Assembly (NCBI RefSeq): GCF_001194135.2
Contig: NC_068982.1
Span: forward strand, 148,183,036 to 148,247,035
DNA length: 64,000 nucleotides
Source of the DNA: Octopus bimaculoides
Taxonomy: Eukaryota
Reading direction: 5' to 3'
A program made the translations under genes and the position numbers. Positions 4,365 through 62,421 of the stretch are shown here, one piece after another. How positions within the stretch are numbered: the first letter of the stretch is position 1; each line of letters begins with the position of its first letter. The notes beneath the pieces were generated by a model. It did no database searches, was not told the DNA's origin, and saw nothing but the letters and a program-made list of their open reading frames with translations.

Positions 4365-4425
4365 CTTGCGAAAATGCTTGTATGTACACTATACAAAAAC
4401 TGCTTAAAAGCAGAAAATACCTCAT
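4365..4425 (-). CDS. Gene C signal-peptide exon MRYFLLLSSFCIVYIQAFSQ(G); remaining exons presumably left of the window
   Basis: Acceptor tatttcag before 4432, ATG at 4425, donor CAAG|GTAAGT; 61 nt. No linker or module exon was found in 1-4364. Confidence 0.85.
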
Positions 4426-16323: not shown

Positions 16324-16525
16324 ACAAAATCGAACACACATGCACAAGGTGTGTGTGCTTTTAGTTCGTGCGTTGGCTGCATTTAAGGCTTAAGGGAAAA
16401 TATTCTCAATGCGCTAGGTGTTTTTACTTTCAGGTGTTTTGAACACCTGGCGCATTGAGAATGTATTCCCTAGCAGCCGAACTACGAACTAACGACACAC
16501 CCTGTGTATATGCGTTCGATTTTGT
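16324..16525. repeat. ~200-nt imperfect palindrome inside the predicted gene B 3'UTR
   Basis: Arms caaaatcgaac/gttcgattttg and attctcaatgcgctaggtgtt/aacacctggcgcattgagaat; ~20-nt loop at 16422-16441. Confidence 0.85.
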
Positions 16526-16672
16526 CTATGTCCTGAATACTCATACATATCTTCAATCCTCGTTTTAATTTACGTTCACGCGCTCCGTGTATATTTTAAA
16601 ACTGGTGTTAACTTGATTATTTGGACTCGTACCTATCTCTAGGTTCAAATATGGTGCATCAACGTTTTCATA

Positions 16673-16680
16673 TTAGCAAC
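16673..16680 (-). CDS. Gene B terminal coding exon (G)C*, followed by 3'UTR
   Basis: TTTCTTTTCTTTTATCTCTCTAG|GT TGC TAA; homologous to 40067-40077. Confidence 0.8.
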
Positions 16681-25600: not shown

Positions 25601-25904
25601 AATTCTCTGTCCTTCTTTATAACAAACACCATCCCGGTAACATCCTAGAAGTTGCGAATATACACAATTTGTTATTTTCAAAACTATAGGTCAGGAAGAA
25701 TAGAATTCTTTTCGAAAATAGCCCATATGCAATTCATGCAATTTCATTTACATCTAATTAAGATAGAAATACTTGTCTTGTTTTAATGACAATGACCCAG
25801 CATAACCACACCAACGCCTTAAAATAAATCAAAGGGAGATTGAAATTCGCATCCATTAGGCAGCGTGTAGGTCGCACTCATCACATGTGCACAAAACTCC
25901 ATAC

Positions 25905-25945
<41 letters not shown>

Positions 25946-28212: not shown

Positions 28213-28257
<45 letters not shown>

Positions 28258-29375
28258 AGTAGAAAGATGACCGTCACCTTCAGTCACAATTCTTCTTTCA
28301 ATACCAGCTTTAAACTTAGTAAGTTTGTGTCACATGAAAAGCTTCAACCATTTCTCAGGCCTACATGGTTGAGTGTTAAATTATATTTACTCCACACACA
28401 CACACACACACACACCTTCGCTCATGTGTGAGCCAGTTATATATTTACTTGTATGTGTGTGTGTGTGCGTGTATAATTACACACACACACACACATTTAT
28501 CATTGTATTTTGTACGTCTGTATAGTATACAATAGTACATTATCCATTCAAAAATAATAATTACACAAATGTTCATATGTTCCAAACAGCACAGACGAAG
28601 TCGAAGTATAAAAGTTTCGAACAGCACCTAGCACTTTCTTCAATATAATATCACAAATTGTTAATCTCTAATTTTGCTAGGTCTCATTATCTGTTCATTT
28701 ACATTTAATCATACAATCGTTGATGCTGTCATGGTTTATAGGGTATAGATTATAGATATAATTTCTTCCAGAGTAAAAGAGAGCCAAATATGTAGCAAAA
28801 TAAAGAAATATGATGAAGACTAAATATGTTAAAATATTTACCTTCCTCTAAGATATAATATTTCGATCCAAGAGGTATTTTCTGCTGACACGGTTTTGTT
28901 ATCCCTGCAAAAATGTAAATATAACTTGTGTTATAAAAATATAACACTAGTTCTCGTTATATTCTTTCTGCTATAGACACAATGCCTGACATTTTCTGGT
29001 AGGTGGCTCGTTGATTATATCTACCTCGGAACTTATCTCGTGCTCATTTTATCGAGCCCGAAAGGATGGAAAACAAACATGATTTCGACGAGATTTGAAA
29101 ATAATGTAAATATCCAGAAGAATTTATTCCGGTATTGATAACTCTAGTACAGTGTAGAGGTGTTGACATAATCTTTGACAGAACAGTGATCCGATATTAA
29201 AATGAAATATTAATTTCGAATGAGCTCCTGCAAAATTTCTATATTATGCGAGTATAAATATGGATTTGTGGTGTTTAACTACGCACATCATTATTTGAAT
29301 TACAGGTGAAATTAATTCAAATATTCAAGGCAAAATCAAGGGGAAAATTGTCACGCTAGAGCTGATATTCTCTGA

Positions 29376-29430
<55 letters not shown>

Positions 29431-29443
29431 AGAAATATATATA

Positions 29444-29482
<39 letters not shown>

Positions 29483-40066: not shown

Positions 40067-40077
40067 TTAAGAACAAC
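40067..40077 (-). CDS. Gene A terminal coding exon (G)CS*, followed by 3'UTR
   Basis: Strong acceptor TTTCTTTTCTTTAACTATCTAG|GT TGT TCT TAA; the homologous acceptor and downstream sequence occur at 16673-16680 in gene B. Confidence 0.8.
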
Positions 40078-40752
40078 CTAGATAGTTAAAGAAAAGAAAT
40101 AAAGCAACTTTTAATAACTGGTTGTAAAATAAAATTTTGCTCAATATAATGAAAGTAAGTAAATCAAATATTGAATTAAAATTGAAGTAAAATCAAAATT
40201 AAAACGAAAATGCATTTATAGTTCTGTTGAAAAGTATGTGAGTAAACATCTTAATAAACTGCTGAGCAGCATTAACATAGAAGTAATTTGTGAATTATGC
40301 TTGAATAGGTTATCAAACTTAGTACTGAATGTAATATCACTATGTTCGAATTACATTAAGGTATGTGATCGGCAAAAAGCAGATCTCCCATCCAAATTAT
40401 TGAAAACTTAAGTATAAGTCAAAAATCTGATAAATCATAATATTCAATATTGAAAACAGATTGAAACTTTCATGTTAAGTGGCTGTAGTTTATTCAAAAC
40501 ATCAGTATGGATGATTCTGCATCATATCGATAGAAATCGTTGTTGAACAAAAATAATTTGTCTATCTTTACAATATTTTAGATTAAACAACTGACAATAA
40601 GCAAAATTACCATCAATGAAATTATCTTAGAGAAAGAGCTTTTTTTTTCATTCGTTTTGGCTATTTACATCAATGGCGTCGGAAAAGTAATGTTATTTTG
40701 ATTGCTTACATTAAAAATGCACATACATACGTACGTACACACATGTACGTAC

Positions 40753-40783
<31 letters not shown>

Positions 40784-40849
40784 TGTATGTATGTATGTAT
40801 GCATGTATGTATGTATGTATGTATATATGTATATATATGTATATATATA

Positions 40850-40883
<34 letters not shown>

Positions 40884-41252
40884 NNNNNNNNNNNNNNNNN
40901 NNNNNNNNNNNNNNNNNNNNNNNNNNNNNNNNNNNNNNNNNNNNNNNNNNNNNNNNNNNNNNNNNNNNNNNNNNNNNNNNNNNNNNNNNNNNNNNNNNNN
41001 NNNNNNNNNNNNNNNNNNNNNNNNNNNNNNNNNNNNNNNNNNNNNNNNNNNNNNNNNNNNNNNNNNNNNNNNNNNNNNNNNNNNNNNNNNNNNNNNNNNN
41101 NNNNNNNNNNNNNNNNNNNNNNNNNNNNNNNNNNNNNNNNNNNNNNNNNNNNNNNNNNNNNNNNNNNNNNNNNNNNNNNNNNNNNNNNNNNNNNNNNNNN
41201 NNNNNNNNNNNNNNNNNNNNNNNNNNNNNNNNNNNNNNNNNNNNNNNNNNNN

Positions 41253-41283
<31 letters not shown>

Positions 41284-44226
41284 AAAGAAAGAAAATCGAG
41301 AACAATGAATGTATGAATAATTTATTTGTATATAAAGATGTTGATATTTTTAAAAAACATAACAGTAAAAATAAATTATAACTTGGAAAGCTAAAAAAAT
41401 GTGAAAAACCTACATATATGTTTCAGTTCTAAACCCTAGTTGGTATGCAATTCTAAGAATTTGGTTATATGCTAAGAAAGGTATAATTGTTTGTCTGTGT
41501 GGGGTAGAACTTCTTCAAGGTCATGTGCTTATCCGTGGATCTAACTTCTTCGAATTGACTGTATATATATATAATATGTGTGTGTGCGAGAAAGAGAGAG
41601 AACAAAATATATATGCATATATAATGAAATAAACTACTAGCTGCAATTTGAGAATAATAAATATTACTTAATATTGCATTAATGGATCAAAACAGTTTGA
41701 TGCAAATTCATTTGTACTCCGAATTTCAAACGTCGTGCTAATCTTAAGTCATTGAGAATTCCCAACGGCTACAGATTAGCATCACTCGGAGTACCAACGA
41801 ATTTGAATCAAACTGTTTTGATTCGTACATATAACTTCCAGTAAATGTGTCGAGTACCCTTCTTTCGGTTGTCCAGTCACTCTATAATATTGAATTAAGT
41901 AATTTAAAGGTCTCGAACAGTATGTACTTCCTTTATTAAATAAAACACTTGAAAATTCCGGTGCTCACCCTTATATTTAGTTTCGAGGATAGCCCCAAAC
42001 CGTATTTTTCGACAATATAAATCAAAACAATTGAATCGCTTTCTTGTTCCAACGGGTAAACACTGATCATTTATTGGACAACCTGCCAGAATAAAAAAAG
42101 TAGTTTATTTTTAAATCAGTTATTGCTTCTGTGAAATATAAAGTTTTATTTTCGTTTTCTTAGATATATACATTATGCATTCGTAAACAATTAAATAATA
42201 ATCGATAGTTGATTGATTGATTTCTTCACTCATGCATTACATCACATAGAGAGAAAGTTTGAAGAGTAAAAGAGAGGTGCAGAGAAAGTTACAGTAAGAG
42301 GTGCAGAATGAGTGCTTAGATGGAGGAATAAGACATGAGTGCTAAATACACAGTGAGAGAGAAAAGTTCATACAGACAGCAGTAGGAAATAAGTAAATGA
42401 CAAAGTAGTTATGGAAAATACATGCATGCATGTGTGAAACGAAATACGTCAGTTACTGCATACTACAGACCAACAGTTTAAAATAATTTAAATTATGGTA
42501 CGCATACATATACATGAAGTGTATATACTTTAGTAAACAAGTACTTAGGAAAAATAATTTAGAATTTATTCCATAGTTCATATCCAAAATGTAAATGAAC
42601 AATCAAATGCAAAATTATTCACTGTGTTCATTTTATATAATGAAAATTTACCCACACAGTATATATATATATATGTATATATACTAACACACATACAGGA
42701 TTTAAATTCGATAATCTGACAAACTTGTATAGCATGCTGTGTATTGCCAAGCAATCTTTCAGGTTCAAACATGCAACATGGTTGGTCTTTTTTGAAAAAA
42801 AGTAAAGGAAGCCAGTTTGTTGGAAAACACGAAAATGTACCTTAGTCTTTCAGAAAAATTTTGTAGTTCTGTAGAGTTCTTAGATCTAAAAAGTATGAGA
42901 TTTTTCGGCTAAACAAAACCTGCATTTCTTTGATTCATTAACCTATGGCGAGGATCGTTCCATGATGCTCCACTTGATTGTATGTGGTGTACAGTTAGCC
43001 TTCAGATCCCAGATATTGCTAACTTCGTGGCTATAGTATTATTCACGATCGAAAAGAAGGCAAGTAGTTAGTGTATCTTTTGCTAAAATTTGTTCTGCCA
43101 ATGCACTTTTTTCTGTTGAGTTTCCGTATTCTGGAACGCTACTGTCACTTCAGCTTCATAAAACACTGAAATAATCGTGCATGTTTGGCCGAGTGCGCGA
43201 GGAACTGAGTTTCGACAGCTACAACTAGGAGTGGACGCTTGGTATGACCTCTGAGTGATAATATTTTTCTTATTGGTTTATCAGCTGTATGTCCATTACA
43301 AATTTTGCTATTAACTGGAAATGCTTATCTATTAAGGCAAGAGATTTTCTACCTACGTCAGTCTTAACATTCAGAGGAAATGGGAACCAACCATATAATC
43401 TTTTTGGTTTTGTAATTTTAATCATATGGTTGTAAGTTATCTTTTCTTTCAAGTCACTGTTAACCAGGGTGTGACTATAATAGGGTGCTTCCTTATCGAT
43501 TGTTTCCTTAGAAGAGGAGAGTTTAGATATATTATTGTTGATATTGACTGTAAGGTTTTTGAACACTATAGTGGTACAATGTAGTAGGATTGTTTATGTA
43601 GATAACTCACTTTTTCATCGGGTTTATTTTGAGAAGGCACATTTAGGTCTTGGGTAGCATCTAAGAAATCGACTTTAGAGAAGTTAGTAATTACAGTAAT
43701 TATGAGGTCTATTCGTCATAGAGTATTTATGAAATTCTTCGTTGATTTAACAAGACCATCATAGCCTATACTATTGTTATAGTATTGACGAATGTCATGG
43801 TAGGGAAACTTAGATATTATCTATCTAATATAAAAAGACCTACTATCAGCACTGCCATATGAATCCATCGATTCATCAAATAATTCATCTTTTTCAGACT
43901 TTATACATAAATGAAGCTGTGTGGCCCAGTGGTTACGGTGTTGCACTCACGATTCTAAGATCGTAGTTTCGGTTACCGAACTGGATGGTACATTGTGTTT
44001 TTGAGCAAAATGCTTCATTTCATGTTCCTTTGCAAATACTTCTCTGTTTGATGTGTAGCACATCGTGCACTCGTTCGGGTAAAGTCGATTTGATGAAAGA
44101 AGTGAGTACATGTATACCACAGGATTTTGTTTATGATAAGCAAATCGTCTGTGCGGGTTAGTCAGCAAGATGTTGCAGAATCCTCATCTGCAGTTTACAA
44201 CAGGAGAGGCAAGCATATATACATAC

Positions 44227-44288
<62 letters not shown>

Positions 44289-47200
44289 GCTGAGAGAGGG
44301 GGAAAGAGAGAAAAGAAGCATGAATTTGGTATTCTTTTATTTCATCTGTTACACGTTTTTGAGTTCGATTATTTAAGATGTATTATAAAAGCAATTTACA
44401 AAGGCCTTTTAATCACTCCGGTTATGTCTTCAGGTCAGGTATTTATATAAGATGGTTGGATGTCTATGATTCGATGTTTGGTATGATTAGGTGCTCTTTG
44501 CAAATTGCATTTATAATACATTCATAATTGAAAACTGAAACTTATGTAACAGATTAAATAAAGGAACAACAGAACACCAAATTCGGGCTTCATGTCTTTC
44601 TCTCCTTATATATTGCTTAATTATTTGTCAGGGCTATCATGCAAGAATGACCAGAAAATTCTTTATTTTGTATATGATTAGTAACTGATGGAGATCAATA
44701 GATAAAAACGCATGACAAATAAAGTATTATTTTCTGTTAGTATATGAAGTACATATATTTTTGGCATGAATGTTTTAGCGTATTACATGACAGACCTTCC
44801 TCCGAGTGATCTACAGGCTTACCCATGAATTCTTTGAAAAAATTATATCCATTTTCGAGTTTCTTGCAAATTCCATAGCGACAGTGCTTGAGTTTGTATT
44901 TCTTTCCAGTTTTGTAACACACATTTTTATCTAAACAACCTTTGAGGGGAAAAATAGTTTTTGTTTATTTCAGTGATTGAAATTTATACTTGTGTGAATT
45001 ATGTAATTATATTGGTCTCATCTGAAATATATAAATTATTCTTTCAATAAATTTATGACTACTGAATATTAACTACGTTTTGAAAGACAAGTATGTACCT
45101 GAAAATTATGTCACATCTCAATAATAATTAATGCCTCAATCAATAAACTCACTTTACTAAACATGGCGTATGCTTTATAACAGAGGGGGAGGTCATTTGT
45201 TTTACTTATAGATATTTATTGATTATTACATGATTGATTTAATAGAATATATTCAAGAGTGCATTTTTCTAAAACATACCTTAATGAAAGCTTTACAACA
45301 AGTTTTGCTTTTTGTTGGCATTGTGATTAAATGTATTATAATTTGAGATGTACCAGATGATATATCTTTTCAACAACATGTTTTAAATTCAATGCGAAAA
45401 GGAAGCAATGATTTTACACCATAGATTTTAACTCTCTGTGTTTAAAAGAAATGGCATCATTGTGACCTATCTTAGAGCTTCGCAAGCGGAAGAAAATGCA
45501 GCTTCTGTTAAAAAAGATTAGAAGTATATAGCTAATCCTAATGTATAGAACTTGGAATTACACGGAATTACTCTGTCTAAATTGCATAACAGTTTCCAAC
45601 ATGGAATCATTCAGTAATATCCTCGTGCACTGTAAATTGCTTTTGAATAATTTGAAATGTAATCTTTTCTAATTTCTCTTAGAACGTTCCCCATTTTCAT
45701 TTGCACGGACAAGTAAAATCTGTGGTGTGACCTCTTTGTTTACTACCCGCAGCATCGATAAAACACATCATTATTGTCATGTATTCATTAAAAACTTAAT
45801 TATCCCAAAGGACTGTGTAGTGCACAATGAATTAATTTGCAACACAGAGCAATATTACACTAATCTTCTGCCTTTTCTGCAGACATATTTCTAGCACAAA
45901 TCACATTGCATAAATAAAGCTCATAAATATTAGATGGAAGAAAACTTCCTAGGAATGAGGGTAGTTGATGTCAACACTCTTTGGAGTCTCATAGATTGTT
46001 GGTTTCCCAGAGATCTGGTCAAAAAGTTTGTCACTAACTTTCTTGAACATTCCCAGGGCACCTACAGAGATAGTTTTTGTTTTTAATTGCAACATCCTAG
46101 ATATCTCAATCTCAAGGTCCTTATATTTCGACAGTTTTTCAAATTCTTTTGCTGAGATGTTTCTATCAGTAGGTACTGTCATGTCAATTAACAAGTATGC
46201 TTTTTGTTTTAGGTCTTTGATGACGATGTCTGGTCTGTTATCATTTATTTGCCTATTTGTATGTATTCCATAATCCCACAGGATAGTAGCATTCTGTCCC
46301 TCAGTGATTGGCTCTGGATGATGTTTGTAACAGTCCTTAGGGTGCAGAATATCATAGTGACGACATACTCTCCAGTATTGGCCAACTCGATCATGCCTGG
46401 TTTTATATTCTGTAGGTGCAAGGACTGAGCAACCGGCAACAATGTGGTCAATACGCTCAAGTTTGTCATTGCAGAGTATACCTCACTGTGTGTGACATTA
46501 GCTTGATAGTTCTAGATAAGAAGACTCTGGCCTTGTGCTGCTAGAATGAATCTTTCTCTTTCAACTTTTAAACCAACACTCTGCAACCACTGATGGGTTC
46601 TTCTTATATTTATATCAGCTTCTCCCAGCTCGTTTGAGGTGTTGCGCATTCAATGGTTTTCTTTTCACAGTCTTGATATTTCCTCGAAGCTTTCCTGTTT
46701 GGCTTTTGCTTTACATATCTCTGCTGCCTTAGTAGGTGGTGTGTCCTTATCAACATCATAATCAGGTAGCTTAAGCTCTCGTCTGTATTTACACGCTTCG
46801 TTGTGATTGAGTGCAGTTTCTTAATCTGTTCATGTTGCCTTACCATCTTGATCTGTTCATGTTGCCTTGCCATCTTAATCTGTGATGAAAAGTGGTGTAA
46901 TCACAAAGTACCGATACTGCAACGATGGGATTGAATCACTAAGCACCCTAATCTCCGGGTGTAAGGTTTTAGCACTTGTAGAGTACAAATGAATATATGA
47001 CAGATGTGTCAACATCCAACACCACTGAATGTGAGGTATTCAATTTCCCATTTTGAAAAGTGGCCTAAGCACATTTATCACGACCAAATTCCATCCCGAT
47101 ATCATCACTGAATGCTTTCACAGACGTAGTAATCCTTTCGCACAAAATTGTAGATATTAATCTTTTAAAATTTTCTAGAGATAATCGTTTGTATGTCCGA

Positions 47201-47588: not shown

Positions 47589-50500
47589 GAGTGAGGGAGC
47601 AATGCATGTCATCAAAATGACACTGGGGTACAAATATACGAAACCCAATATAACTATCATGACGTCTCATCTAAGGGTACACCAGGTACATGCATCATAA
47701 CCATATGTCGGTGACATGGTGAACTCATACAAGATAAATAACGCAGGACCTTGCAAGGAGAAACCGGTTAGGATTTCTTTTCGGTCGAGTAGCCCATCCC
47801 GCTCAAAAGCTCCTTGAATAACATTTGTTTACGAATGTCGAATGAAAGACCCAGTTTTCCAAAGGGGAATTATTCAAACCCCAAAAAATTTCTCTCAACA
47901 CTTTTTTCTATATATTGCGAGCTGGACTGAACTACTGCTATTACTAGCGGACGAGTATCTATAACCGAGGATGACCATAAAGAGGTCGAAACTGTACAGT
48001 CAGGTGATCTCAGTGCTAGAGTTCTCTTCTCGTCAGTGATATATATCGAGTGCAAAGTATACTGAATAACCAACTGGAGAAGGCGCCCTCACGAGTTTAA
48101 AATAGAAGTATCGCCGGTTCTTAAGCAGCATCCGTCTTTAGGTGGGGTTAAACACTACTTCACAATATAAACACTGCTTTCATTTCTCATAGGGATTTTC
48201 TTAACTTGCTAGTTTGCTTGTTACATATATACATATATAGGTATAAATATATATNNNNNNNNNNNNNNNNNNNNNNNNNNNNNNNNNNNNNNNNNNNNNN
48301 NNNNNNNNNNNNNNNNNNNNNNNNNNNNNNNNNNNNNNNNNNNNNNNNNNNNNNNNNNNNNNNNNNNNNNNNNNNNNNNNNNNNNNNNNNNNNNNNNNNN
48401 NNNNNNNNNTATATATATCCACCTCTACCCCCACCTTCAGCCTAACCCACACCACACACCACTACACCATACACCACCATATCACACAACACATCACATC
48501 ACAATACACCACCACATACATACCAGCACTGACCACTTCCCAGCCCCACATTTTCACACATACATACACGCACACGTCAAGATCACCAGCCCTTTTCCAC
48601 ACACACATACAAACTCTCTTGTACAACGCACGCTTACCTTCATTTTGGGATAACCACTACTTTATTACTTCCCCTTCTCCCTAGCTCTCCTGTGTGACCC
48701 TTCTGTCCGGCATTCGCCATGATAGATCGCTAGCCACTACATATTCTTTATTTTCTCTCCTTGTTTCTTTCTGTGTTCCTTTCTGTGGAAGAGCGTAGGC
48801 AAACTTAGGTTCACAGTAGAAATGAGTAAAATGGATCATAAAAACTGGTATGTTACAGATTCAATAACATTGTTTTTCATAGAACGTAAGAGACTAAAAC
48901 AAGAAGTATGGAACGGCTCAGTTTGGTGATTTCCCATCTTCGAATGCCTTCAACTTGGAAATAATGCTCCCTAAATTGGATTATAGTCCTATTAAATATA
49001 ATGAAAAGATGGCTTACACAACAGAGGCTTCAAAGTGAACAACATTTTTATAGAGGTGGGTAAACAGTTCATCCAGTTTACGCACCTCTTTGTACGGCGA
49101 CTTATGTTAGTAGTAGAAGAGACTACAGTGCCCTTGACCCGTTGGGTTACCTGGAAACTCTGACTGTCCCAGCAATGGACTTTTGTTTCGTAAGTTTTTT
49201 CTTTTCCAGTTTATTTGGCATGCTTTCAACGAATGTGACATCGAAAGGTTAGAGTTTCTTTCCTTTCAAGATGGAGTAAAACTATACACCGTTTTGGGTG
49301 TTTATCTCACCAAACACGAATATCTCAATAACTACTGCTCCGATTTACGCGAAACTTGTTTCATTCCTTTCGTATTAATGTATGTATGTATGTATATATA
49401 TATATATATATATATNNNNNNNNNNNNNNNNNNNNNNNNNNNNNNNNNNNNNNNNNNNNNNNNNNNNNNNNNNNNNNNNNNNNNNNNNNNNNNNNNNNNN
49501 NNNNNNNNNNNNNNNNNNNNNNNNNNNNNNNNNNNNNNNNNNNNNNNNNNNNNNNNNNNNNNNNNNNNNNNNNNNNNNNNNNNNNNNNNNNNNNNNNNNN
49601 NNNNNNNNNNNNNNNNNNNNNNNNNNNNNNNNNNNNNNNNNNNNNNNNNNNNNNNNNNNNNNNNNNNNNNNNNNNNNNNNNNNNNNNNNNNNNNNNNNNN
49701 NNNNNNNNNNNNNNNNNNNNNNNNNNNNNNNNNNNNNNNNNNNNNNNNNNNNNNNNNNNATATAAATATATATGTGAGTGCGTGTTTATATATATATATA
49801 GTTTTAGTAATGCTATAAATGATACTGAAAACTATAATGCTTGTCGAAAATTGTAAACGAAGAAAAAGACGACTATAATGTGCACAAGTTACTGTTTTAC
49901 CAGTGTACTAGTTTTGACGTTTAGCCTCTGAGAAACGTTGCTGACGCAGACTTATGATCAAAGATAGCCTAAAAAGATCATCGCTTACGTTGGGGAATAA
50001 AATATCAAAAGATTTCCATCGTTTATTAAGATTGTGGAATGTGAACTGAGTGGGATTTGGCTCCTCTTTTATCTACTAGTAGCTGCTCAATGAATTTTTA
50101 TGTTGATTATGAAAAAGAACAATATTTCTATTTATCAGAATTCATAAATTTCACATGAACAAATTTCATTATACAACTGATGATACATTTTAGCATACCT
50201 GTGAATTCCCTTTTCCACTTATATCCAGTAATTGATAAATTCGTACAGGTAAGGAGTACACATTCACTTTCTGCTACAGTTTCACCAGACTGGTAGCATT
50301 TGTGATTCACTCTACAGCCTGAAAAATAAATTGATAAGAACAATTTCAAATAATTGCAAAATGACGTTTAGAAAGTATAGGATTCTTTTACAACTCTTTA
50401 CATCGGAAACGTTGTACAGTCCCTCGCTGATTGGAAGAGGCGACCGTCTGGAAGGGATGTTCTCGTCGCTCCTTTCTGCCAACGGGCAGCCCCACGCGAC

Positions 50501-51043: not shown

Positions 51044-51254
51044 ATATATGTGTGTGTGTGTTCAAAGATACAGGTAAAGAAATAATTTTATTCTCAAAGT
51101 GATTCCTTATCTCTATCTTTCAATACAAGGCTTCTAAAGCAAACTTTGTTGACCTTCAACGTAAGTTGAATTTAACATATGTATCTATGTATTATGTATG
51201 TATGTATGCATGTATGTATGTATGTATGTATGTACGTATGTATTATGTGTGTGT

Positions 51255-51293
<39 letters not shown>

Positions 51294-53325
51294 TGTGCAT
51301 CACCCTTTTTATTCCTCTTTTACTATTTTTACCGTTCGTTATACAGCTAAATTTAGATTTAATTAATGAAATTAAATGTCCTCGTGCTGCATTGTCTAAT
51401 TGCCTTTCCTCACTACACACACACACACGAAGGTGGGCTGAGAAGCCCACAGGCTAAGTATGAAGGAGGGGTGCTAAAGCTGTAATATCTTGCATTCATC
51501 ATTCCCAACTACAACTATTTTTATCAATAACTGCATTGTTTCTTTCCAGCTAAACTAACATCAGACTCTTCAAAGGCTCCCAAAGAAACTAGTTGCGTCT
51601 TGTCTTGAAAATGGAGAAAAATTAACATCGTCGTGTCATCAAGTACCTGCAGGAAAAGGGTTTAGACTTCAAGGCTATTTATGCTAACATTGTTGCTATA
51701 TTAGGGCATAAGGCTCCAGCTTTATTAACAATGCAAAAAAGGGCAGCTAAATTTGTGAGAAGAAAGAGTCTTTAAGATGACCCAAGTTCTGGACGTCCTA
51801 CAATTGCTACCACCGAGAAAAACATTGCTCGTGTTCACCACATGTTACTGCATGACAGGTAACTGACTGTAAATCAAATAGCCAATGCTATTAGCATATC
51901 TTGTGAGAGAGTAGAGAAAATTCTTCAAAATAAACTTAGCATGACGAAATTTTCTGCGCAGTGTGTGCCACATCTTCTGACACCTGATCAAAATGTACCT
52001 GGTTGATCACATCACAAGAAAATTAGACATTGTTTCTGGCAGATACAACTGGTTGCCATCAACGATTCCTAAGCCAAGTTGAGTGTTGGCTATATCATTT
52101 TGAGCTGCAGATAGATACAATCCATGCAATGGAAACACCCTTTCTTACCTGCTCCGAGGAAAGCCATGGTCATTTTGTCTGCAAGGAAGTTGATGGCCTC
52201 GGTTTTTTGGGATGCAAAAGGCATTGTGTTTATTAACTTTCTTCAAAAGGGCCACACCATCAATGCAAAGTACTATGCCAACTTGCTGGAGCAGATATGA
52301 CAGGCTACCAAAACCTTGTTTCACTAGGACAATATTCCAGCACACAACTCCTTCAATCCAATTGGTGCTGTGCATCATTATAGCTTTAAGCTGGTTGATT
52401 ATTCTCTCTGTTCTTCTTACTTGTATCGCAGTGATGAAGATGTCATGTTGTTAATGACTTTTATCTGTCAAGTGTGGTAGAAGAGGATCACAAGTTTAGC
52501 CTTAGAAATATTTGTAGGCTTATCCCGCTACGTCCGTGCGTTAATATCACGTGAGTATATTTTTTGCACCCAAAATTAAGGCTGACACGATTGAGTCAAC
52601 ACGACTCGTGAGAGTCTGAAACAAGGCTTTCTAAATTTAATTTGTCAAGTGTTAGAGTGGACAGGAATTGTTTCTATGTAGAGCAATGGTTGAATAGTTA
52701 TGGTTTGTATCTATGTATGCAGGCATCAAATTTTGTTCTCCACTAAATTCGTGTTAGAATCATACGATGAAAAGTCAAGAATGTGTTCAAAGTTTTGATT
52801 GTTAGCTGTGTAAATTCAGCACATCACTGAGTTTAGTGGTCAATGTACTTTGTTAAAGTTCAATCAGTCTTTGTTTGAATTTTTTATGAATATATTTTCT
52901 TTGTTTATCCGTGTTTGGTCTGTGGTATTGACTGAATAAAAGTAAAGTGGAAAGACTTGGAACTTGAGACATTTATCTTTTGTGTATGTTTATGTGTCCA
53001 CCCAGCCTTGATTGTTTGAGATTATCACTAGACACGTTCACTCAACCGGGACAGCTTTGATATACGGCGCCAAACATATTGTTACATGGCATTAAAGAAC
53101 GGGCGTAGCTGGGAACTTACAAAACTTTCTAAACCTTATCACGTGATCACCCTCGGTCAGTCAAATCGTATCCAAGACAATTTTTGAATTGCAAACAAAA
53201 GCAAGACAGTTCCAGCATAGGCTTATGACTTTCTATCTCAAGCTTTTGAAAATCAGACAAATCTGTGAAACTGGTTAAGTCTTTAAAAAATTTTAAAACT
53301 AAATCAATCCAAGAGCATTTTCAAC

Positions 53326-53420
<95 letters not shown>

Positions 53421-56400
53421 TGTACATGTATACAAGAGGGAGAGAGAGAGAGAGAGAGAATCCAATTACATATATAATGGCACTTACCAGAAGAAACTTG
53501 AAATTTTGCTCTAACTAATAATCAGGAAATTTTATTCTTGATATTGGTATTAAATATCTTTTAATATATGGTTCAACTAAGGCAGAGATCTTGCAGAATC
53601 GCTAGCATGTCCTGAGTTTAAATACCAGTTGTGTACTGGAGTCTATGTAATCGACTTATCCATCCTCCGAAATTGCTACAAAATTTAAAACCATTACATG
53701 GATCGTCGATTTTATCTATTATCTAAATGTCATCTATTTTATTGTGTTGCAGTCTCCTCAAGATTGATAGATCAATAATACACTAAATTTTTATTTCGGA
53801 GCCTGCCATACATTAACATGACAGGTGTTGGTGTAAAGGGAAAAAGTGAATACAAAAACAGTGTTTTTGGAGGAGTGAATTGTCAACCGAAACATTGCAT
53901 TAAGTAGTAGTTATTTTAGCGATTCCCAAAGATGAAACCGATTCCAAATAAATCTGAACTCAGGAACGAAAAAATGACGAGCATTATAAATTCAGCAAAA
54001 GATTTTACTTTCTGTTCTTATAGATTCTGAAATGCATTGTTTTCCTCATGTTCCACTATTATATTTAGATTATAGATATTACATTCTAGATTTATTTTAT
54101 CGAAACACATGGCACGCATTATATGATTCTGACACGTATTATATGATATGGATTTGGAGGAGAAAAAAAAGAACCTACAAGCCTACCAGTTGTTTGTTGC
54201 CGCATATAAAATACATGTCCTATTCGCTCACAAGTATAAACCAGGCAAGAATATGGCTGTCGTATTTTTCCCCCATCTGGATAACAAACTCCATTTACCC
54301 TACAACCTATGAATTAAAAAGAGACGTAATAAGTTTTGTTTTCTATTATCAACAATGTTCATGAAATACATGTTTGTTCTTGTAACACACTTATAAACGA
54401 TAAATTATCAATTTATCTTCAATGGTGAACATATTTCTATAGCTCGGAATTCATAAATTTCACATGGGCAAATTTCATTATTCAACTGATAAAACTGAAG
54501 TTTTTAACATACCTCTTAATTCCTTTTTCCACTTATATCCAGTAACTGGCGAATACGTACAAGTAAGTCGGATACACGTCCTTAAATTTATAATTTTACC
54601 ACACTCATAGCATCTGCGATTCAATCTACAGCCTGAAAAAATTAATAAGTCAGTTCCTTATAATCACAAAATATTGTTCAGAAAGTATAGAAATCTTTTT
54701 CAACTACTTGAATTGAAAATATTCAATATTCACTTAAGACTAATTAAGTTACGTATGTTTTATATTTGGATTGCGCTGGTATGTTTCAGTGCAGCGACAG
54801 CCAACTTATTGAAACGATAAACTGTGATCTTCTTCTTCTAGTCAGGTGTCGCACTATGCGATGCTGTGGTCATCACGATGTCTTGCCACCTTCTGTTCTC
54901 TGCCCCATGGACAGCTGAGAATAAAGACAACCCTGTGGCTGTGATGTCTTTTAGCCAAGAAGTGGGTAGTCTGCCTCTTTTACGTCTGCCGTATGCCCCA
55001 TTGACTGTAGTGCCCTTTGCTAGAAAATCCATCATCACAACTCCGCGCTGGTCCCAAAAGATTGTGAGTATTACCTTGCCTGCTGAGGGTTGGACACGAG
55101 CCTTCTTTGCAGGTGGTGAGTTATCATCCTTCCATTACTTCAACTGGACTCTAGCTCCATGATCATAGTGCTGGGTTCATATTTCATCCTGTGTGATAAG
55201 TCTGCTGAAAAAGTCCTCCTCGTTTTCTTGGTCAAAAGAGTGTGGGAGCAATTGACTCGTACCTGCTTCTGAAAAGGTCCGAGCATCCAGAGAATCCTTC
55301 GTGCAGATAACTTCTGCATGTACAAATCGGCGTGAAGGATGTTTTCCTCCGACCCTACACTCATCTTCACCTTTTAGGCTAGTTGCCGAATAGTTATGCG
55401 GTGATCCTCCAAAATGGCGGCTTCCACTTTATGGATGGTGTCGTCACCAATAGCGGTATGTGGTCGTCTAGAAATAGAAGTTTCCACCGATGTCCAACCA
55501 TATTTGAACTGGCGATGCCAGTGCTTGACTACGTCGTATGATGGTACGTTGTCACCATAGACTTCTTTCCCCTCACTGAAAGTCGCTTTTGGTGTACCAC
55601 CTTTCACGTATAAGAGTCTCATCACTTATCTGCATTCAACTGCCTCCATTATAACACCTTAGTCCACTTTAGCAGCTATGAAAGACAAACGAATACTAGT
55701 GGAAAGCTGCAATTTACAATGTGACATTTAGAGACATGTATAATTATATATGTACAAGTTCAGTTTCCTGCAACAACCGGAAATTGGTCAGAGGCCCAGT
55801 TCCCTCGTGTTGACTTCACGGAACTCTACTTCACTCTCACAGATAATGTCAATGTGGAAAAATGCATTGAGATTATTTGTGAGAGTGAAGTAGAGTTCCG
55901 TGAAGTAGGGTTCTGTGTTCAAACAGATTCTGCTATGCACGGCTCTCAACATCCGCTACTAACTATGTTTAAATATGTTTAAATAACAGCGATATAACGT
56001 TTTATACTTATTTTATCGAAACATATGGAAAACAGTAAATTCTGGCACGTATTATATGATATAAATTTAGAAAAGAAAAAAAAGAATATACAAGCGTACC
56101 AGTTACTTCATGCCGCACATAAGATAGACGTCCTTTTCGTTTACAAACATAAACCATGCAAGAAAGTGCCTGTTTTATTCCTTTCCCATATGGCTGACAA
56201 ACTCCATTTATCATACAGCCTATGAATTAAAAAGAAACACGATGAGTTTTGTATGTTTTCTATCAACAATGTTTATGAAATACATGTTAGTTCTTATAAT
56301 ACATGTTAGTTCTTGTAAAAGAACCTTATAAACGATAAATTATCAAAGAGTGAGTTGCATTTTCAGTAATAATGCGTTTCAATCGTAGTTCTAAACTAGG

Positions 56401-57132: not shown

Positions 57133-60100
57133 GTCTATGGAGAGCGGGTTTAAGGTTCTCAATAAAATTTTCCATTAGTCTTATAAATTCGCTTGAAATG
57201 TAAAGCTTTTAAAATGGGAACATTATAAATATTTTCTACAGCAAGTCTCTAAATGATTGCTTAATTCGTTCTGATGGACATATATTTCCGACTTTGTTGC
57301 CGGTGTACTCACGTGTTGCCTGTAATTCCTTTTAATTTTGGCACAAGCCCAGCAATTTTGAGGGGTTTGGGCAAGTCGATTGCATACACCTAATTATTTG
57401 ACCGGTACTAATTTTTATCAACTCCAAAAAGGATGAAAGACAAAGTCAACCTGGGGCAATTCTATCCAGAACGTAAAGTGCAAGAACGAACTGTCTCTAA
57501 ACCTTTCCCGATATGCTAATGATTGTAACATTTTGCTCCCCAGTGTGCGATCCGAAAATGAGTTTCATCTCTAGCCAATGTATATTTCTTCACAATTTGG
57601 ACATTCGATGTAGTAGATCACATTTCTGTTTTCACAGTTCATATTTGCATTTTCTTTCGGTTTTTGTGTTGATATACCGACTGGTATATACGAGCTGACA
57701 TGTACCAGAACGGTTATCATTGAATTTTGATACTGTAAACGTTTGATCGATGTTGTTTAGATCAAAATTTTCCTTTGCTACTATTGCTGCAAGTTTTGTT
57801 TTAGCTGCCTTTGTCTTTGAACAAGTGCACGATCTGTAAATAAATCTTTTAGTTTGTTTCTTTAAAAAGTTTTATCAAAATATATTCTGATATCACGGAT
57901 TGTTTATCACTATAAAAGATACGATATTCTGGTCTTGCGTTCCTCTTTGTTGGGAATCTATAAAGTTTTCAATAGGTATTGGTTTTTAAAATTGGATACT
58001 ATTTTCTATTAGTAGTTTTTAAGTCATTCTTCTCTGGTATCTACGTCTTCAAACATTTTCCCGATTAGACAATATGGAACAATACTTTGTGAATGTGCTA
58101 CATGTCATTATTAGAAGGTACGGATGTATATGTGTCTTTATAATTTATATCCTTTTTGATGTTGATATTTTTAAATACTATTATATTGAGAAATTATTAT
58201 TGTATATAGCTCATCTTCTTCGTGAATTTCAAAGTCGGATGTAGATTGTTTAGCTAGAAGTGAATTCTTCCAAACAGTAGATTTTCCCCAAATTAGAAAA
58301 CAATCATCTTTTCGGTGCACTCTGTCTAAATTCTTTTTAATGTGTGCCATAGTTTTCTTCTACTTTTTGATAAGTTCTTGCCTAGACTTTCCTAATACTG
58401 AATTTGTATAAACTGCAGCGTTGTCAAAATAGTGTGTTATACACATGGCTAAGGCTGGCAGCGCTTAATATAATAGCTATAGGGAATCGAATGGAAATCA
58501 CTTCTCTGTTTTTCGATCTAATGTTTAATTACCATTATTGCTAAATCACGAGGAAAATTTGTATTGTGGTTTACTACAAGAAATTTAACCATCACCGAAT
58601 TTGCTCTGTTGTTTTAGATAGATGATACAGGAAAGCAATGTCATCCCGAATGAATTTCAGTTCGTGAGTGTATAGAGGTTTCAAAATTACATCAGCAAAA
58701 TTGCTTAGTTGATGGGTAGATCGTACCGGACTAACTACGAGAGATCTAAATTTTGGGTAAGTTGGTTGTAGCAATTTTATGTATTCACCACCTTGTTCCT
58801 TTTTTGCGTGTTGTATTTCATTTGACATGTATTTGTTAGTTAGCCATAAATGTTGTAAGGTTTAAGTTCAAAATTCGTAATACATTCACTTTTATAAGTG
58901 GTGGTTTATGACGTTTTGAAACCAGATTACTAGGCTGCTTTATATTGTGGTGGTCTACATTTGTACATATTTCAGAGTAAATGGTTGTTCTTCAACTAAT
59001 CTTCGTCGAAATACCGATAATATTCGGCATCCATTATGACAATGACAATAACACCACTCTTATCTGCTTCTTTCGTCACTTTTGTATCATCCTTTTGGAG
59101 ACGTTTAAGTGTAGAATCTCTAATTTGGAAAATATTTCATCTGACACTATTTCATCTGCTTAAGCGAGAATTGGGAATATACTAGTTTAGACATGTATTT
59201 CTTCTCCTTAGCATCATGGATGATAAACACAGCGACACAGTTGAAACATATTGACCGGGTCCAACTTGTTGACAAGGTGTGTAAAAACATGGGTTGCAAA
59301 TTACGACATCCGATTGTAGGACGAGTGTTTCTGCGTCGTTATCTTACTTTTCCATATCCTACGAAGAAATTCTGTTATTATATGTAAAAACAGCAAATAA
59401 TAAATTTGTCAGTGTGTGCAAAGCGTCGTCAAACAGGAATTAATAATTAGAGACACATTTAACAAAGCCAGTAAGATATTTACTACTTCATGTGTTTGAG
59501 GAAAGAAACAACTGTATCTAGAAATATAACAAAAAATAGATATAAAAATGCAAAGAAATGCAATCAAAAGTAAATATATCAAATAAACTAACCCCTGTAT
59601 GCGATTGAACGGATTCCGCTAGTATCTTCTTTTCTCACGCATGGTTTTGATAAACCTAAAAAGTATAAAGAGTCGAGAAAATAAATAATTGATAGTAAAT
59701 GAGTTGTCAATGTGAGAAGGTAAATAGTTGGCTTTTGACGTGTTAACCCACACATCTACACGCATGCGCACACACAGACACACACACACACATTTTCTAA
59801 TATGTTATTTGAAAAACTTTTCTAGAATTAGAGGTAATCAATTAAAAATTAACATGATTTATCTCTACATCTATAAAATCATTACAGTGGAGCAGTAATT
59901 ATAGAACTGTATGAAGAACAACTGTATTGATATTGTAGTAAAATTGAATATTAATTCCATGCGATCTGCTGCAATACTTGTATTATATACGTGAACAGCT
60001 AATGGAAAGTTGTGGTACTTAATCTTCCGCAAAAGAATTTTTGTTGTAATGTGGTGCGGTCAGTTGAAGTGAGAAAAAGAAACGGTTGGGTAATTTACTA

Positions 60101-62068
60101 CTCTAGAGTACACTCACAAGCACTCTTGCACATAATCTAATTATAAATTAGATTAGAGCAACCTAATTACAAATTCAAACACATATCTTAATTGAACTTA
60201 TAATTAGATTTGCATCTCCCTTTTTTGACAAAATGAACTTCAATAATATCATTGACGAATAATATTCCTCCACTATTACTTCTGTTTAGCCTCTCTCTCT
60301 CTATCTATCTATCTCTCTCTTTCTCTATCTCTCTTTCTCTCTCTCTCTCTCTCCTATGATGGTATACTCGGCCTGTGGGATCCTCGCTTGACACGATGTT
60401 CCAACAGCGATGTTCTAGAAACAGGTGTTAGAGACTTTGTATACCCTTTTATTGTATAGCTAAATCAAATGTCCTTGTCAAATCTTCTCAAACCGTCTGC
60501 TTCTTTATTTCTGTTTTAATCTACATACACACATATAAACTTTGGAATTGAATGAAACTCTTTTCATGTAGCTGGATTTCGTTTCAGTATGCAGCACCAG
60601 TTCGTTCGGGTACATTTCCGTAAAGATTGAGAGGTAAAGGAATTCATTTAGTATGTGGTAAAGTTTTTATCATAGTGCTTGAATGCACTGGAAGGAACAT
60701 TCTCTGAGCCAGTGGCTCTGTTGATCTGAAAGAAGAGGAGCATGATGTGTATGCATGCACAGTGTAAACCCTGGTCGAATTGAAGTAGATGAATTTAGAG
60801 AGGTCAAATGCGGAGTGTGGAGCTAGACACAAAATGGGCTGAGAAAATGAAAACTTTCTGCATAAATTTATTGCTCACAGAATCCTTATTGTTGAGAGGT
60901 GGATAAAAAGAGCATTCTGCAAAGTTGGTGAAGATTCTTTTTGCACGGGACCAGAAAGACAGGATGCAGCTTTGGAGACAGGAATGCTTGAGAGCTGTGC
61001 TATGCACGAGACGGCCCTTTGCAAACTGGATAGGGGTTCTACATTTGGATTGTACAATGGACTGTACATTTACGCTCAAAAATGATAAAAAATATATGAG
61101 GGATATGATAAGCCATTCATTTGTGATTAACGTGTCGGTGTTTTAGAGGATGGAAAGCCTAGATGCTTGAATGTATGTTTTTATTTTTGGTATCATAAGG
61201 AATTATGGAAGGCTATGATACGTGGATAGGTTATGGAAGTCCAAACCAGAGATCTGGTCCGAAAGCCTACAGCAGTATCAATTCTACGAAAAGCACACTC
61301 AAGGTCGTAAAGATCATGTTTAACCTATCTCCTTCATAAAAGAGCGGAATATCTATACTTTATAAACGGGGAACGCTAATCAGTTTATCAAATTTTTTAT
61401 CACACTGCTGTGAACTTTTCAATGACTTTTCAAGCTACGAATACCTATTTCTCTTACGCCTGTTTTACTGTCATATAAAGCATTCATGTGTTGTTCAGGT
61501 TGCGTGTGAGTTGGTGTGTCATCGCGTTAATGTTTTGTTTCCATAAATACAGGTTTATTTTTTCGCTTATATTTTTATTTTTGTTTTTCTTGGTACTACA
61601 ATAATCACGCAAATGAAAATATGAAAATATAAATGGGCGCAATGTAAACAAAGCAAAAAACACGACAACATAACACGCACATAGGTCTTGATCACCTATA
61701 AATATATAATACTCGGCAACAAACAGAGAGAAAAACAGTTGGAGAATAAAAGTCATAAACAGAAGTCGTTACAGTTTTGTGCCTAAACATTTCTGACAAA
61801 CTGGTTAGTAAAATAGGCAACAATATTAAAGAAGTATACTACAATCAGTGCGAATGTTTTATGTAATTAGAAAAATCTCACTCACATACGTAGAATTAAT
61901 GTGTTGCAACATCAAACTGGAACCAGTAGTTATACGCTGTTCACAGATGAAAGTGACAATGGATTATAGAGATTACCAATTTACATGAGATTATGGAGTT
62001 TACTTACCTTGCGAAGTTGCTGGTGTGTACGCTATACATAGGCTGATTAAGAGCAAGAAACACCTCAT
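40067..62068 (-). CDS. Gene A: secreted cationic Cys-rich modular protein, 10 coding exons (signal, linker, 7 modules X-Y-X-Y-Y-Z-W, terminal GCS*), predicted 322 aa
   Basis: Exons 62008-62068, 59593-59655, 56100-56219, 54513-54632, 54187-54306, 50582-50704, 50199-50318, 44823-44939, 41969-42082 and 40067-40077 have canonical AG/GT splice sites where expected, are all phase 1, and sum to 969 nt (323 codons) with no internal stop. The architecture parallels gene B. No transcript evidence is available here. Confidence 0.85.
41969..42082 (-). CDS. Gene A module 7 (W type) [39 protein letters not shown]
   Basis: TTTTTTTATTCTGGCAG| acceptor, AAGG|GTGAGC donor, 114 nt; not in the ORF track. Confidence 0.88.
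43270..43800 (-). mobile_element. Penelope-like RT fragment
   Basis: ORF 43270..43566 (KEAPYY...[24 protein letters not shown]) resembles the region downstream of the Penelope RT. Confidence 0.6.
44823..44939 (-). CDS. Gene A module 6 (Z type) [40 protein letters not shown]
   Basis: TTTTTCCCCTCAAAG| acceptor, ATGG|GTAAGC donor, 117 nt. Confidence 0.9.
45950..46900 (-). mobile_element. R4/Dong-like non-LTR retrotransposon 3' relic
   Basis: [33 protein letters not shown]...VGALG is the RLE-domain motif typical of the R4 clade. Confidence 0.8.
47527..47589. repeat. (TAT)n microsatellite
   Basis: Direct reading; another at ~57060-57131. Confidence 0.95.
50199..50318 (-). CDS. Gene A module 5 (Y type) [41 protein letters not shown]
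   Basis: TTTTTCAG| acceptor, ACAG|GTATGC donor, 120 nt; lies within track ORF 50128..50349. Confidence 0.9.
50582..50704 (-). CDS. Gene A module 4 (Y type) [42 protein letters not shown]
   Basis: TTTTTTTCAG| acceptor, ACAG|GTACGT donor, 123 nt. Confidence 0.9.
51425..52500 (+). mobile_element. Degenerate mariner transposon
   Basis: Frameshifted transposase remnants (DDPSSGRP..., [29 protein letters not shown]). Confidence 0.75.
53327..53416. repeat. (TG)n microsatellite
   Basis: Direct reading; many other (TA)n, (CA)n, (TATG)n and (TCTA)n tracts occur, usually next to N-gaps. Confidence 0.95.
54187..54306 (-). CDS. Gene A module 3 (X type) [41 protein letters not shown]
   Basis: TTCATAG| acceptor, ACTG|GTAGGC donor, 120 nt; paralog of 56100-56219 including intron flanks. 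Confidence 0.9.
54513..54632 (-). CDS. Gene A module 2 (Y type) [41 protein letters not shown]
   Basis: TTTTTTCAG| acceptor, AGAG|GTATGT donor, 120 nt; carries a fifth Cys. Confidence 0.9.
54950..55790 (-). mobile_element. Degenerate mariner transposon
   Basis: ORFs 55374..55625 and 55140..55370 ([15 protein letters not shown]...[10 protein letters not shown]; [11 protein letters not shown]); [15 protein letters not shown]. Confidence 0.8.
55813..55906. repeat. 94-nt near-perfect hairpin (42-bp stem, 10-nt loop)
   Basis: acttcacggaactctacttcactctcacagataatgtcaatg pairs with cattgagattatttgtgagagtgaagtagagttccgtgaagt with 2 non-Watson-Crick positions. Confidence 0.9.
56100..56219 (-). CDS. 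Gene A module 1 (X type) [41 protein letters not shown]
   Basis: TTCATAG| acceptor, ACTG|GTACGC donor, 120 nt, 4-Cys pattern. Confidence 0.9.
57850..59350 (-). mobile_element. Penelope-like retroelement relic
   Basis: [28 protein letters not shown]...FIRDDIAFL resembles the Penelope RT N-terminal region. Confidence 0.7.
59593..59655 (-). CDS. Gene A linker exon (G)[20 protein letters not shown](G)
   Basis: CTTTTTAG|GT...AGGG|GTTAGT; 63 nt, phase 1-1; same length and KPC motif as the gene B linker exon. Confidence 0.8.
62008..62068 (-). CDS. Gene A signal-peptide exon [20 protein letters not shown](G)
   Basis: Acceptor tttcag before 62077, ATG at 62068, donor CAAG|GTAAGT at 62008. 61 coding nt, as in the B and C paralogs; hydrophobic core. 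Confidence 0.9.
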
Positions 62069-62111
62069 TTTTCTTTCCTGAAAGGAAAATTATCACAAAA
62101 GTAAATGTTAT

Positions 62112-62186
<75 letters not shown>

Positions 62187-62287
62187 CATACACATACATA
62201 CATACACATGCATGTATACACACACACACACACACGCACACGCACACATATGTATATATATATATTAAAGTAATATAGTTAATGTCT

Positions 62288-62421
62288 GGTCATAGAGTGA
62301 CCAATGGTTCCACATCCACGAAAGCTGTAGCTTCGCGGACAACTCATCGGTTTAGAGTCTGGTGAACCGTCCGCGAAGCTACAGCTTTCGTGGGTGCGGA
62401 ACAATTGGCCACCTTATGACC
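62288..62421. repeat. GC-rich hairpin with a 25-bp perfect core stem
   Basis: ccacgaaagctgtagcttcgcggac (62316-62340) pairs with gtccgcgaagctacagctttcgtgg (62369-62393), with imperfect extension outwards. Confidence 0.85.

Follow-up and report, generated by a model that had tools for sequence, protein, structure and literature searches.

A 64,000-nucleotide stretch of Octopus bimaculoides genomic DNA (contig NC_068982.1, positions 148,183,036 to 148,247,035 of the forward strand; hereafter, the window) contains the gene LOC106869873, whose secreted, cationic product is built of modules M1 to M6, each of about 40 residues and each encoded by one exon. The paralogous module exons of this lineage-restricted gene have most likely been shaped by recurrent positive selection on the surface of a stable scaffold, acting on all branches and across the whole mature protein. 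Diversifying selection had been proposed in a sequence-only reading of one pair of duplicated exons. The proposal is supported, most strongly at the level of the whole gene, where replacement differences from Octopus sinensis exceed the neutral expectation, silent differences match it, and a neighboring paralogue has a ratio of replacement to silent rates (omega) of about 0.4.

The concatenated open frames correspond to A0A0L8HLW9_OCTBM/XP_014771282.1 ("uncharacterized protein LOC106869873 isoform X3", 282 amino acids), every placeable residue of which is found exactly on exons of the minus strand of the window. AG/GT splice sites bound every exon, joining the exons in frame yields the annotated isoforms, and the reading frame is that of the annotated proteins in three species. 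LOC106869873 (gene 1) is the first of three tandem paralogues on the minus strand. Its coding exons, with X and Y denoting co-duplicated modules, are:

62008-62068, minus strand: signal-peptide exon, conserved, with 2 replacement and 3 silent changes between species
59593-59655, minus strand: exon 2, N-terminal linker with one Cys
56100-56219, minus strand: X module M1, coding exon 3, 120 nucleotides (nt), phase 1/1, residues 42-82 of XP_014771282.1
54513-54632, minus strand: Y module M2, coding exon 4, duplicated together with X
54187-54306, minus strand: X module M3, coding exon 5, 120 nt, phase 1/1, residues 122-162 of XP_014771282.1
50582-50704, minus strand: Y module M4, 123 nt
50199-50318, minus strand: Y module M4', cassette exon, present in isoform X2 and absent from X3
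44823-44939, minus strand: module M5, cassette exon, present in isoform X3 and skipped in X2
41969-42082, minus strand: module M6
40067-40077, minus strand: coding part of the last exon, 11 nt, G-GT TGT TCT TAA (-GCS and stop), placed by alignment to the annotated O. sinensis gene end

The module exons are all 114–123 nt long, in phase 1/1 and bounded by AG/GT sites, the symmetric-phase arrangement looked for in tandem exon duplication. The annotated isoforms use M4' or M5 alternatively, and hence these two are cassette exons; M3 is skipped in O. sinensis isoform X2 (XP_029648495.1). The two Y modules M4 and M4' lie 384 nt apart in O. bimaculoides, while O. sinensis and O. vulgaris have a single module there. 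The single M4 of O. sinensis is orthologous to M4', and for the M4–M4' pair omega is about 1.5, which is not significant.

The orthologous genes compared were LOC115222431 of O. sinensis (locus L001) and that of O. vulgaris (locus L002); the latter two species are only 3 coding nt apart (2 replacement, 1 silent), and O. vulgaris adds almost no information. Across the 250 codons of the mature region, omega between O. bimaculoides and O. sinensis exceeds 1 (1.9–2.6, p = 0.0016–0.047). Silent and replacement differences, respectively, number 3 and 2 in the signal peptide, 1 and 9 in the linker, 1 and 11 in M1, 4.5 and 10.5 in M2, 0.5 and 14.5 in M3, 3 and 11 in M5, and 0 and 11 in M6. The neutral yardstick consisted of 14,623 aligned sites from introns and intergenic DNA of this locus, with exons ±30 nt and gap edges excluded. 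Their divergence is 8.14% overall, with 6.7% at A/T, 10.9% at G/C, and about 15% (about 0.147) at CpG cytosines. Neutral simulation of the mature region predicts 47.0 replacement differences (Nd), while 79.5 are observed, a value reached in none of 3000 simulations; the silent differences (Sd) number 13.5 against 15.0 expected. Silent sites thus behave as neutral, and replacements accumulate at about 1.7 times the neutral rate. A direct comparison of replacement sites with introns gives Fisher p = 9e-6. The differences fall on codon positions 1, 2, and 3 in a ratio of 44/30/19, and several codons have been hit two to three times (e.g., codon 38, which appears as V, A, T, or I). Strict neutrality would also predict about 3.6 stop codons in the mature region, and none is seen. 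The statement that holds robustly concerns the gene as a whole: with about half of its positions frozen, replacements still outpace neutral change.

The neighboring paralogue (gene 2), located 11 kb away and with the same module architecture and base composition as gene 1, served as a control. Compared with its O. vulgaris counterpart (locus L003), it has 15 silent differences vs. 12.9 expected and 24 replacement differences vs. 41.6 expected, so that omega is 0.36–0.41, significantly below 1. Its differences show the usual pattern over codon positions (10/10/19). The contrast between the two genes in replacement and silent counts is significant (Fisher p = 0.005).

The pair of exons that had drawn attention, 56100-56219 and 54187-54306, proved to be delimited exactly as in the sequence-only reading, and its counts were reproduced: 29 of 120 nt differ, with zero indels, and 19 of 39 residues are identical, every one with an identical codon. 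All of the 20 differing codons replace the residue, and hence identical residues always stand on identical codons. The split Gly codon at the 5' end differs silently (G-GC vs. G-GT). The near-absence of silent change held as well. By the Nei–Gojobori method, the pair has 26.8 silent (S) and 90.2 replacement (N) sites, with Sd = 1.5 and Nd = 26.5, and the corresponding rates dN = 0.373 and dS = 0.058 give a ratio of 6.4 (one-sided Fisher p = 0.015). The differences at codon positions 1, 2, and 3 number 15, 10, and 3 (p = 0.006 for depletion at the third position). When the same 29 differences are read in the five other frames, Sd rises to 4.5–10. Both exons are preceded by ...TTCATAG and followed by GTACGC (56100-56219) or GTAGGC (54187-54306), in phase 1/1. 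Taken alone, the pair departs from chance at roughly p = 0.005–0.02, which is modest evidence, given that silent sites number only about 27 and that the pair was selected by eye.

Codon models lead to the same conclusion for the X modules. Pairwise maximum likelihood (GY94) gives omega of 7–16 for the X pair, and omega = 1 is rejected at p = 0.0005–0.022 across codon-frequency models. Omega stays significantly above 1 when the O. sinensis orthologues are added: under the tree ((ObiM1,OsiM1),(ObiM3,OsiM3)), in which Obi and Osi stand for the two species, omega is 3.1–5.8, and omega = 1 is rejected at p = 0.0006 with equal codon frequencies, 0.007 with F1x4, and 0.040 with F3x4. Omega does not differ between terminal and internal branches; together with the involvement of the whole mature protein, this indicates that the selection is not special to the duplicates.

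The duplication that gave rise to the X pair extends beyond the exons, with homology reaching about 150 nt into the upstream and about 190 nt into the downstream intron, i.e., the flanks themselves are homologous. The two blocks are:

55913-56365, minus strand: duplicated block around M1 (repeat families D6, D10, and D13), in which the exon and, by a four-sequence MAFFT alignment, about 146 nt of intron upstream and about 187 nt downstream still align with the M3 block
54010-54421, minus strand: duplicated block around M3, paralogous to the block of M1

The flanks of M2 are likewise homologous to those of M4 and M4' (repeat families D7-D9 and D12). In O. sinensis the orthologues of M1 and M3 lie at positions 16404-16523 and 28269-28388 of L001, and the two loci are collinear by blastn. 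Among the informative exon sites, 14 support the grouping ((ObiM1,OsiM1),(ObiM3,OsiM3)) and 0 support concerted evolution; the duplication is thus older than the split of O. bimaculoides and O. sinensis. Gene conversion between the X copies was rejected on the same count. Judged by flank divergence, the X–Y duplication would be about 2.5–3 times older than the split between O. bimaculoides and O. sinensis/O. vulgaris.

These results also bear on the possibility that the pattern is an artifact of a wrong frame, pseudo-exons, mis-paired paralogues, conversion tracts, or mutation bias. The genome is AT-rich, with G/C and CpG sites mutating faster than A/T sites (0.109 and about 0.147 vs. 0.067), and plus-strand open reading frames overlap both X exons in O. 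bimaculoides. However, the frame is the annotated one in three species, all copies retain their splice sites and Cys spacing intact, the antisense frames are broken in O. sinensis, and no site points to concerted evolution. Moreover, the simulations incorporate base and CpG context, and gene 2, of equal composition, gives omega of about 0.4. The artifact explanation is thereby largely refuted, and we find it barely credible. The antisense frames themselves lie on the plus strand at 54032-54364 (110 codons) and 56025-56225 (66 codons); since they contain stops in O. sinensis, there is no conserved gene there, and antisense coding over the X exons was rejected.

The sequence-only reading had also proposed a comparison of exon divergence with that of the aligned intron flanks, allowing for mutation bias. 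Neither of the outcomes that it named as refuting diversifying selection was observed: omega does not fall to 1 when sequences are added, and an excess of replacements persists after mutation bias is modeled. As a qualification, the total divergence of the exon equals that of the flanks. The simulations for the X modules drew on the neutral spectrum of the local intron alignment, including base and CpG context. For the orthologues of M1 and M3 taken together, 4.3 silent and 14 replacement differences are expected, vs. 1.5 and 25.5 observed, and the replacement excess is significant (p ≤ 0.002). For the paralogue pair alone, calibration by the flank divergence of 0.20 predicts 5.6 silent and 18.7 replacement differences vs. 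1.5 and 26.5 observed, with probabilities of 0.026 for Nd, 0.02 for Sd, and about 0.007 for the replacement fraction.

Several observations weigh against positive selection, and part of them would be expected if constraint were relaxed and sampling noise did the rest, with loops outside the Cys/Gly scaffold evolving at omega of about 1 and the silent deficit of the eye-picked X pair being a fluctuation. Firstly, divergence between the M1 and M3 blocks is 29/120 = 0.242 in the exon and 58/289 = 0.201 in the flanks (upstream 0.139, downstream 0.241), values that do not differ (p = 0.36); the exon overall thus diverged like introns, and the oddity lies in the distribution of differences inside it. 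Secondly, the Y modules, which stem from the same event, have a proportion of differing replacement sites (pN) close to that of X (0.24–0.26 vs. 0.29) together with a normal proportion of differing silent sites (pS, 0.25–0.27) and omega of 0.9–1.0, which implies that the extreme ratio of the X pair (6–16) comes largely from its few silent changes. Thirdly, pooling X and Y into one unit brings the test to p = 0.052 (pS 0.157, pN 0.279), the X pair of O. sinensis reaches no significance by itself (omega 1.6–2.9, p = 0.08–0.46), and the silent counts of X and Y show no robust difference (p = 0.02–0.13). To these points are added the dependence of the paralogue test on calibration and the limited material. 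With the downstream flank value of 0.24 the expectation for the X pair becomes 6.7/22.6 and the replacement excess loses significance (p = 0.17), so that against the intron yardstick the pair alone is borderline (p = 0.026–0.17 by the flank chosen). Significance becomes only nominal (p = 0.02–0.047) under the codon-frequency model with the most parameters; effectively, only two independent lineages are available, and the exons have 39 codons with about 27 silent sites.

The effect size in the X pair is accordingly overstated by small numbers: its ratio owes much to there being 1.5 rather than about 5.6 silent differences in about 27 sites, which may be due to chance. Yet relaxed constraint fits poorly with the rest of the gene. 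About half of the positions are invariant, and a mean pN at or above the neutral value therefore needs other sites to exceed it. Across the gene, Nd reaches 1.7 times the intron expectation while Sd agrees with it, omega = 1 is rejected in the four-taxon test, changes gather at codon positions 1 and 2 with several codons multiply hit, and none of the stop codons predicted under strict neutrality is present. We consider relaxed constraint unlikely.

An alternative source of the low silent counts is constraint on the silent sites themselves, if the X exons were regulated cassettes or carriers of RNA signals, in which case a small denominator would push up the ratio. Silent changes in X indeed fall below the flank-based expectation, both between paralogues (1.5 vs. 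5.6, p = 0.02) and between orthologues (1.5 vs. 4.3, p = 0.06–0.07), one annotated O. sinensis isoform omits M3, and 110 nt upstream of M3 are strongly conserved between species (2/113). Replacements, however, exceed introns independently of dS (25.5 vs. 14 in X; 79.5 vs. 47 gene-wide), gene-wide silent divergence equals the intron expectation, and the window contains no Rfam element and no conserved antisense frame. The 120-nt flanks of the X exons are jointly at the intron mean (0.063 and 0.080 vs. 0.081), and flank conservation of the cassette-exon type is therefore unsupported for the X exons as a group. Silent-site constraint as the explanation seems to us very improbable.

Recurrent positive selection on the module surface, the preferred reading, can be related to the properties of the protein. 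The mature chain, preceded by a signal peptide, is about 30 kDa with an isoelectric point of 9.6, 53 Lys/Arg vs. 15 Asp/Glu, and 26–27 Cys; no N-glycosylation motif occurs in it. An alignment of 24 modules, drawn from three genes in three species, shows no variation at C1, C7, G11, or C20 and almost none at C25; the modules are 39–41 residues long, lack an invariant Trp, and follow the consensus CxxNGxCYxxGxxIx5Cx4Cx5GxY. Between-species replacements in gene 1 gather at module positions 2–5, 10, 12, 18, 26, and 29–38. The module is predicted by AlphaFold2 to be all-beta, with a short N-terminal hairpin, a short strand at 13–15, and a long C-terminal hairpin (21–28/31–38); the confidence (pLDDT) is 77 with 12 module sequences and 89 with 23, the latter for the M3 model. 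In strand 21–28 the conserved positions 23, 25, and 27 alternate with the variable 24, 26, and 28, and in the model this alternation would fit one buried and one exposed face. Module M2 of O. bimaculoides has a fifth Cys at module position 10 (CYECGK vs. CYRSGK in O. sinensis), which gives the mature protein of this species an odd number of cysteines (27), so that one free or intermolecular Cys is predicted.

The following scenario best accounts for these features. An ancestral X–Y exon pair was duplicated in tandem before the split of O. bimaculoides from O. sinensis/O. vulgaris, and the copies then evolved independently, without gene conversion. Purifying selection keeps Cys1, Cys7, Gly11, Cys20, and Cys25, along with a few hydrophobic or aromatic positions, fixed in every module, while other positions, i.e., 2–5, 10, 12, and alternating sites along both C-terminal strands (26–38), are replaced faster than the local neutral rate, on all branches of gene 1 but not in gene 2. 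Recurrent positive selection would most likely act on the surface of a stable scaffold and is not confined to the period after duplication. The variable surface may be a putative ligand-binding face in an antagonistic or co-evolving extracellular interaction, as we infer from the pattern of replacements.

Secreted disulfide-rich proteins that evolve rapidly, in which the signal peptide is conserved and the mature region hypervariable, are a familiar class, exemplified by conotoxins and by mussel peptides of the MgCRP-I/myticin type. LOC106869873 resembles the conotoxin/MgCRP-I class in its conserved signal exon, invariant Cys framework, mature-region replacements above the neutral rate, tandem gene copies, and taxonomic restriction. 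It differs in being a 30-kDa chain of six to seven exon-duplicated modules, in contrast to a short single-domain peptide, in having no propeptide, and in having a neighboring paralogue under purifying selection. Such rapidly evolving secreted disulfide-rich proteins form the context in which one paper is cited here (PMC4558851).

Searches in databases returned sequence relatives only within Octopus. Pfam gave no credible match for the concatenated modules, for single modules, or for four full-length family proteins, and no PDB sequence matched either the protein query or the module profile. In a HMMER search of 1.84 billion representative proteins with the module profile, there were four true clusters, all from Octopus (the three genes and a fragment); the further matches were rejected as low-complexity repeats. 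A literature search found no description of LOC106869873. Foldseek with two module models found no match at E < 0.1 for either. The hits for the two models included MUC2 D3 (TMq, the TM-score relative to the query, 0.71; probability 0.85; E = 1.4) and, at E = 3–8, fibronectin type I (FnI) pairs and the MUC2 C-terminus. The best E-value of the M3 model was for the chitin-binding domain of Blo t 12 (E = 0.75, probability 0.69, TMq 0.56; not significant).

Several known module types invite comparison. As in the mucin/VWF modules (TIL, E, and VWC) and fibronectin type I modules, there is one octopus module per phase-1/1 exon. The N-terminal C-x3-G-x2-Y-x2-G-x2-hydrophobic pattern recalls the VWC/FnI hairpin, a resemblance that we presume to be a lead only. 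However, the four-Cys pattern C-x5-C-x11-12-C-x4-C differs both from the 10-Cys VWC/TIL domains and from the FnI pattern, and neither the modules nor the four full-length members matched VWC, fn1, or TIL in Pfam even at E ≤ 10. With peritrophin-A/CBM14 the octopus module is linked only by the weak fold match to Blo t 12, and its hairpins carry conserved aromatic residues, but it has four Cys rather than six and no Pfam match at E ≤ 10, and we do not assign it to that family. The Sushi/CCP domain is similar in its four Cys, extracellular setting, and phase-1/1 exons, yet the octopus module has 40 rather than about 60 residues and lacks both the conserved Trp and the Sushi Cys spacing. The UniRef name "Sushi domain-containing protein" given to isoform X2 (A0A0L8HLT6) is unsupported, as there is no Pfam Sushi match at E ≤ 10.

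Besides gene 1, the window contains gene 2 and the beginning of gene 3:

20644-30897, minus strand: gene 2, orthologue of O. sinensis LOC115232515, with signal exon 30835-30897 and exon 2 28840-28905
27869-27985, 25523-25642, 23378-23497, 21676-21792, and 20644-20760, minus strand: modules of gene 2
4366-4425, minus strand: signal exon of gene 3 (LOC106869870), the remainder of which lies outside the window

In gene 2 of O. bimaculoides the fourth scaffold Cys of the first module (27869-27985) is changed to Ser, and a new Cys, derived from Ser, appears eight residues downstream; in the linker exon (28840-28905), Cys is changed to Tyr relative to O. vulgaris. These changes may reflect disulfide re-wiring. 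The protein encoded by the well-formed module exon 25523-25642 is 95% identical to its O. vulgaris counterpart; this module is missing from the O. sinensis isoform X3 protein, and the exon is thus probably a cassette. Where the last module of gene 2 would be expected, there is an assembly gap (N run, 19680-20405). The last gene 2 module exon of O. vulgaris (L003 25226-25342) has no match in the window, but the stretch that directly follows it aligns to 19168-19367 with 96% identity. Region 16613-16736 shows 77% identity to the region of the terminal mini-exon in gene 1 (…CTAG followed by GTTGCTAA) and probably represents the final coding exon of gene 2.

The intron between M1 and M2 contains, at 54780-55660, a degraded mariner (Mos1-type) fragment with HTH_48 and a partial DDE domain (Transposase_1), interrupted by stops and frameshifts; this stretch has no alignment to the collinear O. 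sinensis intron. Long microsatellites (TATG/TA, CA/GT, and CT) abound in the introns, at 40741-41300, 44190-44300, 51190-51310, 53310-53450, and 62080-62290, and the window has twelve assembly gaps.

As to function, the binding-surface or arms-race part of the scenario is an inference from the pattern of change, and any role is putative. The sequence-only reading had named toxins, immune effectors, and gamete-recognition proteins as classes in which such a replacement excess is typical. As a first guess, we rank recognition of microbes or other non-self by a cationic effector first, on account of the strong positive charge, with reproductive and salivary roles next. A bolder possibility, which we hold to be decidedly unlikely, is a recognition system invented by cephalopods, in which a new 40-residue module confined to Octopus was multiplied by exon and gene duplication, its surfaces were diversified, and cassette splicing mixes multivalent binders. 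Modules optional in annotated isoforms are M3, M4', M5, and the gene 2 module 25523-25642. If true, such a system would be a functional analogue of the diversified immune or mate-recognition molecules of invertebrates.

Nothing is overturned by these results, as fast-evolving secreted cysteine-rich proteins are already a familiar class. The phenomenon is thus a known one, and what is new is a well-controlled case from a cephalopod orphan family whose module is unclassified. Cephalopod genomes are rich in lineage-restricted genes, and the signature of LOC106869873 points to an interaction under conflict or co-evolution: the protein changes about 1.7 times as fast as local neutral DNA, its disulfide scaffold is fixed, its signal peptide is conserved, and a constrained paralogue provides a built-in control. 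The gene is therefore a well-defined candidate for a role in octopus immunity, saliva, or reproduction, and its module is new for structural work.

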